Shown here: positions 49,660 to 64,000 of the stretch, in pieces
How positions within the stretch are numbered: position 1 is the stretch's first letter
Layout: each line of letters begins with the position of its first letter
Source of the DNA: Anaeramoeba ignava BMAN
Taxonomy: Eukaryota > Protista > Anaeramoebae
Length of the DNA stretch: 64,000 nt
Direction: 5' to 3'
Assembly: GCA_028826165.1 (NCBI GenBank)
Contig: JAPDFW010000067.1
Location: 310,001 to 374,000 of the forward strand
The notes under the pieces: generated by a model
The model's input: the letters and a program-made list of their open reading frames with translations, nothing else
Database searches by the model: none
What the model was told of the DNA's origin: nothing
Position numbers and translations under genes: made by a program

Positions 49660-51740
49660 ATGGAACAAGAAAAATCATTTACAAAAATTGAAACACATGA
49701 AAACTTTGCAAAAGTAAGAAATAAAAAATAAACAAAAAAATAAATAAAAAATAATAAAAATAAAAAATTTGAAGTATTCAAAAATAATTGGAAAAGGAGC
49801 TTTTAAAACAGTATTTTATGGAATTAATTTAGAACAAGGAAATGAAATTGCATGGAATGAAATAGATTTAGGAAGAATTAGCGAGCAAGATTACAAAAAA
49901 CTAAAAAAAGAAATAGAAATATTAAAAATAATAAAAAATTCACAAATAATTCGACTTCTTGGTTATTGGTTGGATTCAAACAATGAAAAATTAATTTTTA
50001 TAACGGAAATGATGCAATCAGGAAGTTTAAGAAATTATATTGATAAATTCAAACAAATAAGTGTTCGCGCAATTAAAAAGTTTAGTTATCAAATTTTACA
50101 AGGAATTGATTATCTTCATTCTCTTGATCCTCCAATTATTCATCGTGATATTAAATGTGATAATATTTTTTTTAATGGAAGTGATGGTTCAATTAAAATT
50201 GGTGATCTTGGAGAATCTACAATTCTAAATAATGGTTATGCCAAGAGTGTTATTGGTAAATTTCACAATAATTCAAACAAATCAAAAGATTTATTTATTA
50301 AATCCAAATTAAATTCAAATTAAATTCAAATTAAATTCAAATTAAATTCAAATTAAATTCAAATTCAAATTAAATTCAAATTAAAATTAAATTCAAATTA
50401 AATTCAAATTAAATTCAAATTAAATTAAATTCAAATTAAATTTAAATTCAAATTAAAAATTAAATTCAAATTAAATTCAAATTCAATTAAATTCAAAATC
50501 AAATTCAAATTAAATTCAAATTCAAATTAAAAATTAAATTCAAATTCAAATTAAATTCAAATTAAAAATTAAATTCAAATTAAATTCAAATTAAATTAAA
50601 TTCAAAAAAAAAATGGATCATCTTCTCTCTTTTAGGTACACCTCAATTTATGGCTCCAGAATTATATGATGAAAAATATACAGAAAAAGTCGATATTTAT
50701 GCATTTGGAATGTCTGTTTTAGAAATGGCAACAGGTGATTATCCTTATTGTGAATGTGAAAATCCTGCTCAAATTTTCAAAAAAGTTACTTCAGTAATTT
50801 TAATTATAAAATATTTGATAAATATAAATAATTTTTATATTAAATGTGCTTTTTTATTATTCATTTTATATTTTAATAGGGAATTCCTCCAAAATCATTA
50901 AATAAAATTGCAAATCAAGAAATTCAAGATTTTGTAAAACTTTGCTTACTTCCAGAAAATGAAAGACCTTCTGCAAATCAACTTTTAAATCATCCATTTT
51001 TTGCTTCATTAAATGTGTCTCAAAATCAATTTTCGACAACAAATGGAAATTTTGAAGATAATTCAACTGATGAACAAATTTCAAATCAAATCCTTGAAAC
51101 TATTAAAGAAAATGAAAAAAATCAAGAACTGATAAAAATTGAAGAATTTATAAAAATTGAACAAATTATCCAAAATGAAGTTGAACAAAAAAACGAAGAA
51201 GTTCCAAAAATTCAAAAAAATTTAAAACAATTCATTAAACCAAGACATGCAGTTTCATTACAAGAAAAAAAAGAAAGAATGAAAAAATTAAAAATTATGA
51301 TCCAAAAAGAATATCTAAAAGATGATTTTTCAAAAACATCAGAAAATTTGAAAGATTTGTTAAATCAAAAAGAAGAAAAAATTGTTGTTTCAAGAAAAAA
51401 TAGGAGATTTAGTATTTCTGCTATTAAAGACAAAGGAACAAATAGGAAAAATGATTCACCAAATTTTTTAACTCCAATGACTTCAGTTATTCTTGAATCT
51501 GAAGAGAACCAGAAAAATTCAAATTCATTTCAATCAAGTTTATTAGAATTTCCATTTTCTTCACAAAATGAAAATTGTGCTTTGGATATAGAAATTCAAA
51601 AAAAAAGACAAACCAAATTAACAAATGCTATTAAAAAATTTGATTTGAAATCTAATTTTAGCCCAAATCAAGAATTGGTTCCAATGTCATTAGTTGTTTC
51701 AAATAAATTAAAAGAAAGTCCTAATTCAACTTTCTTTTAA
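49660..51740 (+). CDS. WNK-family Ser/Thr kinase; exons 49660-49713, 49775-50255, 50636-50793, 50880-51740
   Basis: [10 protein letters not shown] with the Lys in the glycine loop and IAWNEI lacking the VAIK Lys. Also [44 protein letters not shown]. Confidence 0.92.
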
Positions 51741-54900: not shown

Positions 54901-56661
54901 TCAAATTTAAATCAAATATAAATCAAATTTAAATCAAATTTAAATCAAATATAAATCAAATTTAAATCAAATTTAAATCAAATTTAAATCAAATTAAAAT
55001 CAAATTAAAATCAAATTAAAATCAAATTTAATCAAATATAAATTAAATTTAAATCAAATTAAAATCAAATTAAAATCAAATTTAAATCAAATTAAAATCA
55101 AATATAAATTAAATTATAATTAATATTATAATTATATTATATAAGTACATTATCCCAGAAATGAGAAACAAGAGCATGTGAGACACCAGGAAGTCTAAAA
55201 AAATTAACAGCAAGCATATCAACACAAAAAGGAAAAATCAAAGAAAAACCTTTTCCTTTTTCTGTGATTAATTTAGAATCAACCAAAGTTTGTGTTTCAA
55301 TCATTAAAGATCTATATTGGCTCAAAATTCGATCATTTTCAGGTTGGTTTGATAGAATGCTAAATTCTTCTCTTCTTGCAATTGCAGATATTGATTTATA
55401 AAAGAGATGCCTTTTATCAAATATTGCTGCTCCAACATCATTCAATAAATGCGACCAAATTCGAAGAAAAATTTGTATCATAGCTCTTTTTTTTGATATT
55501 TTTTTATAATCTTTTTTATTTTGATTTTAATTTTGATTTAGATTTAGATTTAGATTTATATTTATATTTATATTTAGATTTTAATTTAGATTTTAATTTT
55601 GATTTAGATTTATATTGGTTTAGATTTAGATTTAGATTTATATTTAGATTTATATTTAGATTTAGATTTAGATTTAGATTTGGATTTAGATTTAGATTTG
55701 GATTTAGATTTGGATTTAGATTTAGATTTTGATTTTGATTTTAATTTTGATTTAGATTTAGATTTAGATTTAGATTTAGATTTAGAATTTTGATTTTTGA
55801 TTTTGATTTGAATTTTAGATTTTGAATTTGATTTAGATTTGATTTATATTTGGATTTGGATTTTAGATTTGATTTAGATTTGGATTTGAATTTAGATTTA
55901 TATTTAGATTTTGATTTTAATTTAGATTTTGATTTTGGAGATTTGGATTTAGATTTGATTTTAGATTTAGATTTAGATTTAGATTTATATTTAGATTTTG
56001 ATTTAGATTTTGATTTAGATTTAGATTTGGATTTTAATTTAGATTTTTGATTTTTAATTATAATTTTAATATTAATTTTAATTTAGATTTTTAATTATAA
56101 TTATAATTTTAATATTAATTTTTAATTTTAATTTATATTTAGATTTTAATTTATATTTTAATTTTGATTTAGATTTAGATTTAGATTTAGATTTAGATTT
56201 AGATTTAGATTTAGATTTAGATTTATATTTATATTTATATTTAGATTTATATTTAGATTTTAATTTTGATTTAGATTTAGATTTGGATTTGGATTTGGAT
56301 TTAGATTTAGATTTAGATTTTGATTTTAATTTTGATTTTAATTTAGATTTTAATTTTAATTTTAATATTAATATTAATATTAATTTTGATTTTAATTTTA
56401 ATTTTAATTTTAATTTTAATTTTAATTTTAATTTTAATTTTAATTTTAATTTATATTTATATTTTAATTTTAATTTTAATTTTAATTACGAAATGAATGA
56501 AGTTGAAGAAAAGGTAAACATTCTAAAAGATTTTCAGCTTTTTCTCTAATTGAACTTTTTATATTAAAGACATTTTCTAGTTTTTGCATTAACTTAAACA
56601 ATTCACTTAAATTTTTTAATATTTTCTTTTGTGGTTCTGTAAGAAAAATTTGATTTTGCAT
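51926..56661 (-). CDS. Conserved helical protein, probably DUF1765/UPF0592 family; exons 56661-56490, 55483-55149, 53560-53127, 53027-51926
   Basis: Phase-consistent GT-AG junctions. AVNFFRLPG, FPGF, RTNAYN, TLAFIYNI and FF...VVRDYF resemble DUF1765 proteins (from memory of the family). Confidence 0.6.
53561..55148. repeat. Intronic satellite, 11-bp unit AAATCAAAT(T/A)T
   Basis: Direct reading. Confidence 0.95.
55500..56489. repeat. Intronic simple repeat (GATTTA)n / (AATTTT)n
   Basis: Direct reading. Confidence 0.9.
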
Positions 56662-56670
56662 TTTAATTAA

Positions 56671-59600
56671 AGCCTTCTCCCAAAAAAATTTTTTTTCGAA
56701 TTTTTGATTTTTTTTTTTAACACGTGTCAGTTTTTTAAATAAAAAAAAAAAAAGTTTTTCCTGTTCTTCTTTTCTTTTGGAATCTTTTCTTCTTTTTATT
56801 AAATTCCATCAAAAATTTGTGTATTTTTTTGGCATTTTTTTTGAATTTCTTGTTTGAAAAAATCAAGAAAAGAAAAAGAAAAAAAAGAAAAAGCAAAGAA
56901 AAAAGAAGAAAGAAAGTGATAAATTTTGGAATTGCGTGATTCAATATGTAATTGTTGATTGGGGTTTCAGAAAAAATGATACTCTCTTTTTTCCCCATGG
57001 ATGATTTGCCATGAGAGTTTCAATTTGATTTTGTGGTTTAAGATAAATGGGAATTTTTTTTTTGTTCAAAATTTGGACTAGTATCATCAATCTGAATCGC
57101 AATGCTAACCAATGATTCATCACCTGAAGACATTTTTCAATTGGCATTCCCCATGTCAAAACTAACCAAAGAAAGAGAAGAACGAAAATCCCACATTGGG
57201 CTCGGTCAATTTGAAGGTTTGTGGTATCCAAAACAATCCTTTCAAATTTTCTATTATTAACTCCTTCCATAAAAAAGGTGATTCTCTCACCGAAATTGGC
57301 AACTTCCTCTTTCCAACATTGAGGAAAACTGTTAAATTGTAAAATTTGATTCTTATTATGATCAACTATAAAACAGACATAATGATTCACATACCACCAA
57401 ATTAAAGGAACTGGGCTCTTATTTTTATCTTGATCAAATCTCAGAATTCTTTTGCATTCCTCCATGTTTTCAAAAAACTTCTCTTTTTCCATCCATTCTT
57501 TTGATTCTGTTTCAAAAATCCTGATTTGTTCATTTTGGGCCAAATCATTTCTTAGATCTATTGAGGATAGCCAATTAGAAAAAGCTTTCAATTTATTCAA
57601 GTGTGGATTATTGGATTGAAAATTTTGGAAGTACTCAATCAGATTTGGTAGTGTTTGTTGTGTTTTCTCTAAAAATTGGTCAAAATTCTTTCTATCTTCT
57701 GCCTGTTGGTTTTCAAATTCTTGGAGATTTCGGTATCCAGCTGAAAATTTTCTCATAGTAGGATCGAGAATCAATTTAGTCCAATCGGGATCTAAATGGT
57801 ATTGATCCTGAAATAAAAATCTCAGGACAATAGAAATATCCTCAAATTCAAGCCATCCGTTTATATCCCACCTTTCCCACCAAGCTTCATGAATTTCATA
57901 AGTGAGTTGAATGGGTGTTGGCTCATTAATCAAATGATTCAAAAAATCATCTATCTCCGACCGATTCCTCCTTATTTCTTCTTGATATGGATAATTTTGA
58001 AGCATTTTTTGGAGTGGAAAAACTTCTCTTCTTGTTCGGTTTCTCTTTTTTTCATTGGCAAAATCAATTAAACGAGGATTCATTTTTGACCTAATTTTTG
58101 TAATTGGTTCCTTTTTTTTTTTGCCATTACTTTGAGTTTCTCTTTTTTTTGTTTTTGTTTTTGTTTTTGGTCTTTTTGGTTTCAATTTGGTTTCCGATTT
58201 ACAATTTCTTCTCTTCTTTGTTCTTTTTTTTTTTTCTTTTGGAGAATTGGAATTAAAATTTGATTTTTCCACCTCTTTTTGATTCGAAGGTTCATCAATT
58301 TGAAAGATTTCTGGGAGAGATTGATGAAGGAGAATTTTTTGCCAGTTCATATCCTTTTTTTTTCTTCTGTTTTTCTTGTTTTTGTTTGAAAAAGATTCTT
58401 CATCTTCATCTTCATCTTCATCTTCATTTTGAGATTCGTGATATTGTGAAATTTCTTCTCCAAATTCTATTTCCACTTTATATTTTACTTGATTTTCATT
58501 ATTTTGATTATTTTCATTATTTTCATTATTTTGATTATTTTCATTATTTTCATTATTTTTATTATTTTCATTATTTTCATTATTTTTATTATTTTCATTG
58601 TTTTCATTGTTTTGATTATTTTCATTATTTTCATTATTTTTATTATTTTCATTGTTTTCATTATTTTCATTATTTTTATTATTTTCATTGTTTTGATTAT
58701 TTTCATTATTTTCATTGTTTTGATTATTTTCATTATTTTGATCATTTTCATTATTTTCATTATTTTCATTGTTTTGATTATTTTCATTTTGACGTTCTTG
58801 TTCCTTTTCCAAATCACTTTTTTGCCTAGTTCTATTATAATTCCAATCTAAGGAAGCTAATTTATACAAAAGAGGGTAATTTCCTGAATGTGTAAGTTTT
58901 GATCGATAAAGGTTCAGCACACTAAAAAAAGACTCACAATGGCTTGTAGATAGATCATATCGACAATATATCAATTTTTGTAGAATGGGCACATCAGATA
59001 GAATGAGTTTAAGTAATTCAAAATCCTGATTTGTATTGATTTTTTTCTTAACAGTGCAAGGAGGCGTGCTATTATTAGGATCTTTTGAATATTTTTCATT
59101 GAATTTCACGCAGAATTCATGATTTCCATTTGAATGAATGAAATAAATGAACCAATTTTTAAGGAGAATTGGAATATCTCCATGACAACTTTTGATACAT
59201 CTCAAAAAATGAGAAATAATAGAACCTCTCCATTCCAAATATTTATCTTTTTCTTTTTTGAGCTCTTCTCTTTCTTTTTGTGTTAGTTTTCCTACTTTTT
59301 CTGTTTCTTCTCTTTTTTTTCTTTGTTGTGCTAAGAATCTTGTGATTATTTTTGCAATTCTTCTTCTTATACTTCTTGTCACATGCCAAGGATCGAGCAA
59401 ATGCATCACATGTGGCAATTTTTTTGTGATTTCCATACAAGTTTTTTGGTCGTGGATTGTTGCTATGATCGAAAAATTATTTTCTACAGCTTTCACTCCA
59501 TTTGGAATTATAACATTTTCTAGTCCTTGAGATTTGATCGTTTTTGTAGTAGATGAACTTTCAAGATGGCATATGTAGTTGAACTTTGTATTCTTTTCGA

Positions 59601-62376
59601 TGAAAGCCCCACATGCATTTGAAGATCTATTGTTTCTATGAGCAAAACCAGTATCATGAGCCAAAATCAAATACACTTTTGGTTTTTCATCCTTCATTTC
59701 TTGAGTTTTAGGTGGATTTTGAATGAGATTGAAATCATAATTTTGATTGGAACAATTCAAACTGTTTTTTTCAACCCTTTTATCATTATTTTCATTATTT
59801 TTATTATTTTCATTATTTTCATTATTTTCATTATTTTCATTATTTTCATTATTTTCATTATTTTTATTATTTTCATTATTTTCATCATTTTCATTGTTTT
59901 GATTATTTTCATTGTTTTGATTATTTTCATTGTTTTGATTATTTTCATTATTTTCATTATTTTGATTATTTTCATCATTTTCATTATTTTCATTGTTTTC
60001 ATTATTTTGATTATTTTCATTGTTTTCATTATTTTGATTATTTTCATTATTTTCATTATTTTCATTATTTTCATTATTTTCATTATTTTCATCATTTTCA
60101 TTATTTTCATCATTTTCATTGTTTTCATTGTTTTGATTATTTTCATTATTTTGATTATTTTGATTATTTTCATTATTTTCATTATTTTCATCATTTCCAT
60201 TATTTTCATCATTTTCATTATTTTCATTATTTTCATTATTTTCATTATTTTCATTATTTTCATCATTTTGTGAATCCTTGTGATGATGTTTTTTATGATG
60301 TTTTTTATGATGTTTTTTATGATGTTTTTTCGTCTTCTTATTCTTATTCTTATTCTTATTCTTATTCTTATTCTTATTCTTATTCTTATTCTTATTCTTA
60401 TTCTTATTCTTATTCTTATTCTTATTCTTATTCTTATTCTTATTTTTATTTTTATTTTTATTCTTATTCTTATTCTTATTCTTATTCTTATTCTTATTCT
60501 TATTCTTATTCTTATTCTTGCATATTCCTTCTTTATTTTCAATACAGTGTATGACTTTTTCAGTTAATTCAGTTTGGAAATTCAAGATTTCTTCTTTTTC
60601 TTCCAATTTATTCCCTAAGAAAAGTGATTTTGCAAGTTTCGCGATTTTTGGAATTTGTTCATTTGAAATAAAATTTTCTTTCATATGTTGAATCATGTCC
60701 GATTGTTCAGGGTCTGTTTCTTCTCTAATTTTATTATCAATTTCTTTAATTTTTGTTTGGTACATTTCTTCAACGTTATGACTTAACTTGTATTTGACAT
60801 CCTGGCAATATTCTTGTCGTCCTTCTTGTGTTTTAATATTCAACATATTGAGAACACGATAAAGTTTGGAAATGACGAGTCCATTTATTTTGGCTCCTAT
60901 ATTGAAAACTGAACGAAAATTTCTATCTGTTTCGTATGAATCTTTGAAATTTTGTATAGCTTGACGAGTTTCTTGTGGTGATTTTCGGGATTTATATAAT
61001 GAATCTTGATTTTCCCCAGTATTTTTAGTTTTACTTTCTGTTTTTTTCTTCGAATTACTTGATTTTTCGCAAGATTCTTGTTTTGATTTCTCATTTTTGG
61101 GTTTTTCCACTTCATGATAATAAAGTCTTCTTCTAGTTTCTTTTAATTCTTCTTCCTTTTTCATGAGTTGTTTGTATAAATTTTCTTTCTCCGCTCGTAA
61201 ATCAAGAACTAATTTGGAATTTTCTAAATAAGAACCATCTTTTAGTCTCATGTTTTCTTCCATAGATTGCACTAATTTTCTTCTCAATTCTAAAATTTCA
61301 AGAGATAAAGCTTCTATCTCTTGTGATTTTTTGTTTACTAAAGTTTCAACTTTTTTCATTTGTGTCATCAATTTTTCTTCCATTTGTACATGCAAATCTA
61401 TATGAGCATCTTTTGAATAAGACAAATTAATCCATTTTTTGTTCGTTTCTTCTAAAATTTTGATTTGATTTTCCAATTCTTTATATTGAGTATTTAATTC
61501 CATTATTTGATCTTTTAATGTCTTTATTTTGTTCTTTTTCTTGATCTATCAAAAAAAGAGAATTAAAAAAAAATAAAAGGGAGAAAAACAAAAAATTTAC
61601 CATTTTTGCATTATCATTATAGCATCTTGAACAACAATATTTGCTCTTAATAGCTTCTTTGGAGCATTCTAGAAGAATTTGGGTTGGTTTTTTTCCTTTT
61701 TTTGGTTTCATTTTCCCACATATATAACAAAGACGAAGATTAGTTTTTTTTTTTTTGAAATTTTTCATTTTTTTTTTCAAAAAACAAATTGAAACAAAAT
61801 TGAAAGAGAAAAATAAAAGAAAACAAAAAAAAAGTTGTCAAAAAAAAAGTGAATATTGATCTGCCAGAAAAAAAAATATTTTTTTTATATTGTGTGATCT
61901 TTTAAATAAACAAAAAAAAAAAAAAGGAAAATACAAAAAATTGATTGATTAGAGGTAAATATTTTTCTTTTATTTTTCATTTAAACATGGCAGTTTTTGC
62001 ATGATATTAAAAGAAGAATATATCTTCAAATTAAAGCATGGAAAAAATAGCCAAAAAAAATTGTTTTTGTTGAAAAAAAAATTAAAAAAAAAAATTGCAC
62101 ATTCCTATAAAATTTTAATAAATTTTTTCAGTTATTTCGTGCTAACTTTTTCTGAGAATGCTGTTAGAATAAATATAAATGTTTCTTCTGTGTATTTCTA
62201 TTTATAATTTTTGAAAAAAAATGAATAAGAAAAAATGAATAAAAAAAAAAAAAATTTAAAATGAAATTGATGATAATCTTTTCTCAATTTTTTGATAAAA
62301 ATAAATTCACAATAGAAAAATCAATAAAAATAAAAGAAAATGACTGGGAAAAAATTTTTTGCTTTGGGGGAAGGCT
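56671..62376 (-). mobile_element. Autonomous-type Kolobok-like DNA transposon, ~5.7 kb
   Basis: Left end TTAA|AGCCTTCTCCCAAA; right end TTTGGGGGAAGGCT|T-TTAA. This is a 14-bp TIR with 1 mismatch and one extra T before the right TTAA. It encloses a single transposase gene. Confidence 0.85.
56941..61768 (-). CDS. Kolobok-type DDE transposase with N-terminal Cys4 finger and coiled coil and a C-terminal Ulp1/C48-like protease domain (~1590 aa); exons 61768-61601 and 61545-56941
   Basis: Exon 1 has CYIC...CSRC. Core has AHDTGF (D), IHDQ (D), LDPWH, IISHF, HSNGNHEFC, TSHCESFFS (E), LASLDWNYN. C-terminus has WLEFEDI, NHYVC, QFNSF, LQIDRAQCGIFVL. Confidence 0.82.
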
Positions 62377-62562
62377 TTTAAGAAAAAAAAATTTTTTTTG
62401 AAAGAAATAGAAAGATTTTTTTTTATTATTAATTTTAAATAAAGAAAAAGAAAAAGGAAAAGAAAAGGAAATTAAAATGAAAAATAAAACATTTTTTTTT
62501 GCTTATTTTTATTTTTTTATTTTTTTTTTCATTTTTTTTTTCATTTTTATTTTTATTATAAA

Positions 62563-64000
62563 ATGGAATTTTCTATTAATTCAGAAAGACTTGAAGAAAT
62601 TATTGAAGATGACGGTGGTTTAATTTTACCTCAAAAGAAAATAAAAATATAAATGAAAAATATAAATGGAAATATAAATAAAAATATAAATGAAAATATA
62701 AATAAAAATATAAATAAAAATATAAATGAAAATATAAATGAAAATTCAGATGAAAAGCATTCACATAAACATAGAGATGAAAAACATTCATATAGACATA
62801 GAGATGAAAAATATTCATATAAACATAGAGATGAAAAATATTCATATAAACATAGAAATGAAAATAATGATATTTCTACCAACTCAAGAAAACATAAGAA
62901 TTTATATTCAAATTCAAATGAAAAAAATTATAAAAATTATCCAAATTATTCATATTCAGATTCAAAATATTCAGATTCAAATGAAATAAATGAAAAATTA
63001 TCCAAATTATTCATATATTCAGATTCAAATTCAAAAATTCAAAATATTCAAAATATTCAAAATATTCAAATTATAAAAATGAAAAATTATTCAAATTATT
63101 CAAATTATTCAAATTCAAATAAAAAATGAAAAAAAATTATTCAAATGATTCAAACGAAACAAATGAAAAATCAAACAAAATTTCGAACACAAAAATATCG
63201 ACAAATTCAACCACCAACACACCTTTTCACACAGGAGGAGTTAATGAAAAACACTCCAACAAATAGAAGAAAGAAAAAAAGGAATGCAAAAGGAATCCAC
63301 TATTCAGAAATAAAAGAAAATCCAAAAAGAAAAAGAAAGCGGATGGGATATAAAAGACCCAAAATTAAAAACGAAAGTATCAGGAGAAGAACTAATAGAA
63401 ACACTTAAAAAAACATCATGGGATGGAAGAACACCACAAAGAAATAAAAACTCAGAATGGGATCCAACACCCCAAAGAAAACCATCTCAAACATTTGAAG
63501 CATATCGAACACCATTAGCAACGCCATCATACAAATACAACAAATGGTTCAGTCAAAACAAAGGCAACGTGAAAAAAACCACGAAGCCAAAGTTTCTCGA
63601 GAAAAAAGACGATGAAACTGACGAGGAGTTCGAAGAAAGATTGAAGGAATTTGAGGAAGCTGAGATCGATGTGGAGCGGAATTGGTACGATGCTGAAGAA
63701 TCAGGAGCTGTTGAATCAACTTCAAATACATTTTATGGAAAATTGGAAAAATTCGAATCTGTTGAACAATCTTTAGCTGTCAGACAAACACAAAAATTGA
63801 CAGCAAGACAAAACCAAATCAATCGAGAAAATGACAATTGGGAGGAAAACAGATTAATCACTAGTGGTGTTGTTGAAAGAACACAAAAGGAGGAAAACAC
63901 GCAAATAGAGCAGGATGAATCACGCATTAGCGTTATGGTTCATGATTTGAAACCGCCTTTTTTAGATGGAAGAATCGCATTTACAAAGCAAAAAGAACCT
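62563..64000 (+). CDS. PRP16: Pre-mRNA splicing helicase PRP16/DHX38, N-terminal part (3' truncated by window, several apparent indels)
   Basis: ATPSYKYNKW, ERNWYD, DNWEENRLITSGVV and VHDLKPPFLDGRIAFTKQKEP, read in an unlisted frame from ~63400. Confidence 0.88.

Follow-up and report, generated by a model that had tools for sequence, protein, structure and literature searches.

DNA transposons may carry a C48 (Ulp1-type) protease as cargo, as Zisupton elements do, and reasons for Ulp1-type cargo have been proposed since 2006-2010, none of which has, to our knowledge, been demonstrated. A C-terminal Ulp1 or OTU domain has been described in Ginger1, Ulp1 in Mutator and OTU in Helitron, and in Trichomonas an IS5-like transposase carries a C19 hydrolase (PMC2836005). 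The Kolobok superfamily is defined by TTAA duplications and RR...YY termini, its C/DxxH motif being common to hAT, P, MuDR and Dada (Kojima and Bao, PMC9587614); the accessory proteins listed in this 2022 survey are KolX, a DEDDh exonuclease, a PD-D/ExK nuclease, a RecQ helicase and a His-Me nuclease, with no protease among them. Here we describe an element of 5.7 kb in Anaeramoeba ignava, located on the minus strand (62376 to 56671) of a 64,000-nucleotide stretch that was analysed as a whole (contig C68, positions 310001-374000; hereafter the window), in which a Kolobok-type transposase is fused in frame to a predicted protease of clan CE. A fusion of this kind had been suggested by a reading of the window sequence alone (the original prediction), which knew of no Kolobok lineage with this architecture. 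The survey is in line with that statement, and no report of a Kolobok-Ulp1 fusion was found in the literature searched, Repbase entries lying outside the comparison. This supports the view that an accessory protease has not been reported for Kolobok, while the architecture is known from other superfamilies. The precedents named at the time stand for Ginger1 and Mutator (PMC2836005), but not for Dada, as the original Dada paper mentions neither Ulp1 nor any other protease.

The element, its gene and its sister family

The genome assembly of A. ignava (42.8 Mb in 147 AT-rich contigs, labelled here C13, C68, C74 and so on) derives from polished nanopore reads (10.1101/2023.03.03.530753), so that single-base indels are expected in homopolymers and repeats. 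The window element and a second insertion on C69 constitute family A, and a sister family at other sites is referred to as family B. The features of the window copy, in window coordinates, are as follows.

56667-56670, no strand: TTAA target-site copy at the 3' (right) end of the element; the family-A copy on C69 also has CT and then TTAA, in a different flank
56671-56696, plus strand: 3' terminal inverted repeat (TIR), about 26 nt, imperfect, ending in CT (end comparison)
56941-61545, minus strand: exon 2, 1534 codons and stop codon, with transposase core and protease in a single frame (translation; coding part 61545-56944)
56980-57930, minus strand: predicted CE-clan (Ulp1/SENP-fold) cysteine protease domain; codon starts W 57855, H 57384, N 57333, Q 57213, C 57195
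58490-58790, minus strand: in-frame 9-nt repeat, an Asn/Glu-rich linker spacer that is not in family B
58830-59720, minus strand: Kolobok-type DDE core; codon starts D 59655, D 59451, DPWH 59394, H-x4-H-x2-C zinc-finger motif from 59136, E 58935
59790-60510, minus strand: in-frame low-complexity tracts (Asn-Lys, His/Lys and Asn/Glu repeats), differing in length between the two family-A copies
60550-60963, minus strand: N-terminal region, 40% over 138 amino acids with family B (family-B alignment), without a match in Pfam; probably belonging to the transposase
61546-61600, minus strand: GT-AG intron, 55 nt, phase 0, with the same donor position in family B
61601-61768, minus strand: exon 1, 56 codons, with a CxxC...CxxC motif common to family B (translation and family-B comparison); a putative zinc-binding, DNA-binding module
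62349-62376, minus strand: 5' TIR, about 28 nt, starting with AG (end comparison)
62377-62381, no strand: left flank; the assembled minus-strand sequence is TTAAA, and the duplicate at C68:465750 has TTAA (flank comparison)

The predicted ends, AG and CT with short TIRs, were confirmed at 62376 and 56671: 13 of the first 14 nt are identical, and an imperfect match extends to about 26-28 nt. The 14-mer has no further occurrence in the window at up to two mismatches, and the exact end pattern was found four times genome-wide, always at a family-A element end, with no match for the reversed control. The TTAA that had been predicted to flank the element is clean on the right side; on the left side the assembly has one surplus A, which is likely a homopolymer error, and the locus duplicate has TTAA at this position. 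The spliced, stop-free frame was likewise recovered as described, amounting to 1590 amino acids over the two exons, of which 361 form the linker between core and protease, and the public gene model of a family-B copy splices at the same donor position. The spliced protein was searched in the form of its separate exon pieces.

Between families A and B, the residues D687, D755, DPWH 774-777 and E927 of the core are invariant, and their positions, like those of the protease motifs, lie within a few bases of those originally given. Both families have a zinc-finger motif (H-x2-G-x-H-x2-C...C) between DPWH and E, as do all Kolobok lineages except Kolobok1 (PMC9587614); motif spacing and zinc finger, compared by eye, agree with the Data S5 alignment of the same study. 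In Atlas, the features of the core match eukaryotic Mutator-like (PF20700) transposase clusters at 0.94-0.95 and a parabasalid cluster at 0.89. For the core, the comparison of A with B gives a ratio of nonsynonymous to synonymous substitution rates (dN/dS) of about 0.17 (Nei-Gojobori, with dS near saturation). Taken together, the TTAA duplication observed in family B, the AG...CT (RR...YY) ends with TIRs, the D-D-DxxH-E motifs and the zinc finger agree with the definition of the superfamily and support the predicted membership of the element in Kolobok. These same features are shared with the named lineages (Kol0, KolobokD, E, H and P, and the trichomonad Kolobok_TV and TrFo), and KolobokE and KolobokH also place their accessory enzyme downstream of the transposase domain (PMC9587614). 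The A. ignava element differs from the named lineages in its single gene with a CE-clan protease and in having no KolX frame, no long terminal direct repeats and no CCHC finger after the first D.

The second family-A insertion, on C69, has no left TIR and carries about 12 substitutions outside the repeats and two frame disturbances. Family B, which is 48% identical to family A in the core and 37% in the protease, comprises five copies of 5048-5098 bp on C13, C67, C75, C89 and C107, all of which read TTAA, AG...CT, TTAA and have perfect 27-bp TIRs, with pairwise substitutions of 0.2-1.5%. Moreover, C89 and C107 contain duplicated regions; the insertion present in one of them is matched in the other by an empty site with one TTAA, and vice versa. 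Thus, the family-B flanks and the reciprocal empty sites are direct evidence of the choice of target, of its duplication and of recent movement. From the window alone, a PIF/Harbinger-like duplication of 3 bp (TAA) could be read; it is ruled out by the TTAA at all family-B copies and empty sites. The genome-wide search with the TIRs that the original prediction had proposed returned the recurring family-A ends, and family B supplies copies with TTAA and empty sites. Recent activity, which the prediction had deduced from the intact frame and TIRs, finds support in near-identical copies at different locations and in the empty sites, mainly in the sister family.

The order of transposase and protease is the same in seven separate copies of the two families. 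No copy of family B (five copies) is open end to end in the assembly; the frames on C13 and C89, which extend from the core through the linker, overlap in register with the C75 frame, which extends from the linker to the end of the protease (99% and 95% identity over 132 and 177 amino acids, respectively), and the frame breaks near the junction of core and protease are private to single copies. For these reasons the fusion is, as judged from the reading frames, the state of the family. The assumption of a hidden intron of 37 nt where the family-B protease begins was considered and is not needed, the shift being private to one copy, and a frame break in the family-B majority sequence proved to be false, resulting from gap placement in homopolymers.

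Some further observations concern the copies themselves. The C89 and C107 insertions are 1.7 kb apart and represent either two independent insertions into a duplicated region or a local hop. The duplicate of the window locus at C68:465750 is inverted, rich in indels and situated at the contig end, with 97% identity over 1.6 kb of left flank; the segment (C68:460500-470365), comprising the element and at least 1.6 kb of left flank, is either an assembly artefact or an inverted segmental duplication. At C35:492000-510999 there are relics of both families, diverged and with internal deletions, and a separate Mutator-like (PF20700) transposase match at C37:37413-38210 probably belongs to a further Kolobok-type family.

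The protease module and its carriers

Structural comparison bears out the Ulp1-like nature predicted for the C-terminal domain. The AlphaFold model of the C-terminal 330 residues (predicted local distance difference test, pLDDT, 73.5) matched a NEDD8 protease with a Z of 17.0 (root-mean-square deviation 3.1, 191 aligned residues), Ulp1 with 16.6 (186 residues) and SENP3 with 16.6; the top 29 fold matches all belong to clan CE or close relatives, bacterial deubiquitinases and viral proteases reached Z 11-16, and unrelated folds did not exceed 6. The Foldseek check suggested earlier returned SENP5 at E 8.8e-4, the matches by Foldseek and VIA together take in SENP5, SENP8 and Ulp1, and Atlas agrees. 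Pfam C48 (PF02902) stayed just below its cut-off (E 0.0013, 19.1 bits versus 20.7). The catalytic residues H1444, N1461, Q1501 (oxyanion) and C1507 are invariant in six transposon-borne sequences that are 17-37% identical to the window protease, and a His-Asn-Cys triad is ordinary in the family, Asn being present in 30 of 87 aligned domains. The C-terminal domain is thus predicted to have the CE-clan fold with a full His-Asn-Cys triad and oxyanion Gln. With Ulp1, SENP and NEDP1 (MEROPS clan CE, family C48) it has in common the fold (Z 15-17), the His...Cys order and the oxyanion Gln; it differs from them in its low identity (12-19%), in Asn as the third triad residue, in Tyr or Phe instead of Trp after the His, in its score below the Pfam cut-off and in a helical insert of about 100 residues before the catalytic sheet. 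In clan CE, the region of this insert shapes substrate choice, and the substrate of the protease is therefore not readable from the fold; SUMO, NEDD8 and ubiquitin proteases match it at similar Z. Between families A and B the protease has a dN/dS of about 0.31 (Nei-Gojobori, with dS near saturation), which indicates that the domain is under purifying selection.

Apart from the Kolobok copies, a genome search with the protease yielded long frames on C74, C117, C134 and C137 (about 280-300 amino acids matched, E 1e-23 to 4e-8), the N-terminal parts of which are DDE_Tnp_4 and HTH_Tnp_4 transposases (E 1.9e-26). A profile together with Pfam coordinates added C126, a second site on C134, C35:574420-576054 and C98:18492-20162, and at the C35 and C98 sites transposase and protease domains occupy one open frame. 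In total, at least four families of Harbinger/ISL2EU type carry the protease. They resemble the Kolobok element in the C-terminal protease lineage, the full triad and shared N- and C-terminal extensions, and are unlike it in their unrelated IS5-like transposase with HTH_Tnp_4 and, in the C134/C137 family, in a 3' end GGCCC that is followed by differing flanks. In A. ignava, the protease is accordingly, to judge by these sequences, not particular to Kolobok. A quickly built tree unites the six transposon proteases (Shimodaira-Hasegawa-like approximate likelihood ratio test, SH-aLRT, 82) and pairs the two from Kolobok (86), at modest support, with outgroups taken from the matches of the same profile and without host C48 genes. 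These data point to a protease module that is transposon-borne in this host and that may have moved at least once from Kolobok to Harbinger/ISL2EU-type elements or in the opposite direction, or may have entered both from one source. No description of a Harbinger-type protease fusion was found in the literature searched. Six other C48 loci exceed the Pfam cut-off (C109:127747, C1:785183, C41:8872, C20:8105, C114:172949 and C64:986884); they are mostly unmatched by the transposon-protease profile, those on C20 and C114 being matched weakly, and may be host genes or further elements.

In a hidden Markov model (HMM) search covering 1.84 billion representatives, scores better than 1e-10 were restricted to four proteins, all from A. 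ignava; the remaining 78 matches are generic C48 domains with E 6e-8 or weaker, and none of the 17 longer weak matches scanned in Pfam had a transposase domain. Word-based protein searches (with the core, and with the protease in full-length candidates), viral and metagenome contigs and an Atlas search with core and protease revealed no homologs outside A. ignava, all of these being insensitive to distant kin. Among previously described fusions, Ginger1 is similar in that a C48 protease follows its DDE transposase in frame at the C-terminus (PMC2836005), and is unlike the A. ignava element in its Gypsy-integrase-type core, CCGG/CCGT targets and longer TIRs. C48 cargo is also shared with the ULP genes of Mutator elements in Arabidopsis, maize, rice, melon, hydra and lancelet (PMC2836005). 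The transposase and target duplication of Mutator and Zisupton differ from those found here, and the plant Mutator ULP proteins carry PMD/DUF1985 domains and match the window protease weakly (E about 1e-4). The protease would constitute a sixth kind of accessory protein for Kolobok, and the recurring capture of proteases for ubiquitin-like modifiers by DNA transposons (Ginger1, Mutator, Helitron) would be extended to two more superfamilies within one metamonad genome. We consider the presence of one protease lineage on two unrelated transposases in one host to be the most notable part. The two carriers together provide a compact test set.

Possible roles of the protease

We think it rather probable that the tethered protease removes a ubiquitin-like modifier (Ubl) in the vicinity of the transpososome, its targets being the transposase or factors of silencing and repair. 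According to this model, the element would be a cut-and-paste transposon of autonomous type, and its one spliced gene would give rise to a single protein consisting of the N-terminal Cys4 motif and a helical region, the DDE core, a flexible linker and a CE-clan isopeptidase. The core would bind the TIRs, excise the element and insert it at TTAA, where target choice and duplication are taken from the copies and empty sites and the chemistry from the superfamily. The protease would most likely stay tethered and strip a Ubl, such as SUMO, ubiquitin, NEDD8 or a host-specific modifier, from the transposase itself or from chromatin, silencing or repair proteins at the element, and this deconjugation would help transposition or blunt silencing or degradation. 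By inference, the protease might be specific for SUMO and act against silencing. A Ubl profile gave 127 matches in the host (on C65, C147, C70, C59, C24, C87, C66, C56 and C75). Among these are polyubiquitin arrays that repeat every 228 nt, further arrays that repeat every 231 nt, and long proteins in which several divergent Ubl domains occur. Tentatively, it might be speculated that A. ignava silences or destroys transposases via Ubl, that unrelated superfamilies swapped one deconjugase module as a counter-defence and that the helical insert may tune the protease to a host Ubl.

Several results speak against the proposed fusion protein and its role, in addition to the limits of the tree mentioned above. 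On the core, both Pfam matches fail the cut-off (Mutator-like PF20700, E 5e-4; ISL3, E 4.5e-4), its AlphaFold model has a pLDDT of 47 from a shallow alignment, and no structure matched above Z 7.5, none of the matches being informative. The whole frame is open in the assembly only in the window copy, and there is no spliced read or other RNA evidence among the read runs listed, none of which is on record as RNA. Finally, neither SUMO nor its E1 enzyme is demonstrated in the host: a single-exon SUMO gene is not evident, and no match of the Ubl profile scores above ubiquitin.

Rather unlikely, in our view, is an activity in trans on host pathways other than silencing (stress, DNA repair or cell-cycle Ubl signalling), or a binding of Ubl-modified chromatin that steers integration without catalysis. 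A link to DNA repair has been proposed for transposon Ulp1/OTU domains by Bao et al. (PMC2836005), the large helical insert could alter specificity, and the divergent Ubl domains of the host are many. Binding alone, however, is difficult to reconcile with a full catalytic set that is invariant across sequences of such low identity (17-37%), and the fusion to two unrelated transposases argues for action beside the transpososome.

The original prediction had also considered self-processing. In such a case, the protease would cleave its own polyprotein to release or mature the transposase, similar to the CE-clan proteases of large DNA viruses. The in-frame fusion behind a long disordered linker would fit, as would a weak match to the vaccinia I7 family (E 0.014) and the presence of I7, African swine fever virus and adenovirus proteases among the fold matches (Z 11-13); however, SENP, Ulp1 and NEDD8 proteases outscore the viral ones in this comparison. 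Gly-Gly and Ala-Gly are the usual cleavage sites of the clan. Since the family-A and family-B proteins are devoid of Gly-Gly and the linker has neither Gly-Gly nor Ala-Gly, self-processing is improbable and this part of the prediction was not upheld.

Even less probable is that the protease is neutral cargo, a captured piece of a host gene from which the element gains nothing. DNA transposons often capture genes, and the host has further C48 genes (the six loci above); this explanation is, however, already largely refuted by selection, given a dN/dS of about 0.31 at near-saturated synonymous sites, and the protease is kept in two Kolobok and at least four Harbinger-type families, while the host loci mostly escape its profile. 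An assignment of the element to a different C/DxxH superfamily (MuDR, P, hAT or Dada) or to piggyBac, or an assembly artefact as the source of the fusion, is hardly credible in spite of the 'Mutator-like' Pfam label, the known Mutator-Ulp1 elements (PMC2836005) and the indels of a nanopore-based assembly, as the strict 4-bp TTAA duplication with RR...YY ends and the constant domain order in seven copies stand against it.

Neighbouring frames and other loci

The element sits between two host reading frames that point outward. A possible host start codon is located at window position 56661 on the minus strand, 9 nt past the 3' end of the element, and beyond the opposite end a frame with many TP/SW repeats (63314-64000, plus strand) leads toward a helicase just beyond the end of the window. 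Farther away, positions 49748-51737 of the plus strand encode a two-exon protein kinase which, by eye, appears to be WNK-like. Elsewhere in the genome, on C1, a frame of 301 amino acids (locus L040:2815-3717, minus strand) ends in an HSLR-like motif and, also by eye, resembles a tyrosine recombinase (Crypton-like).

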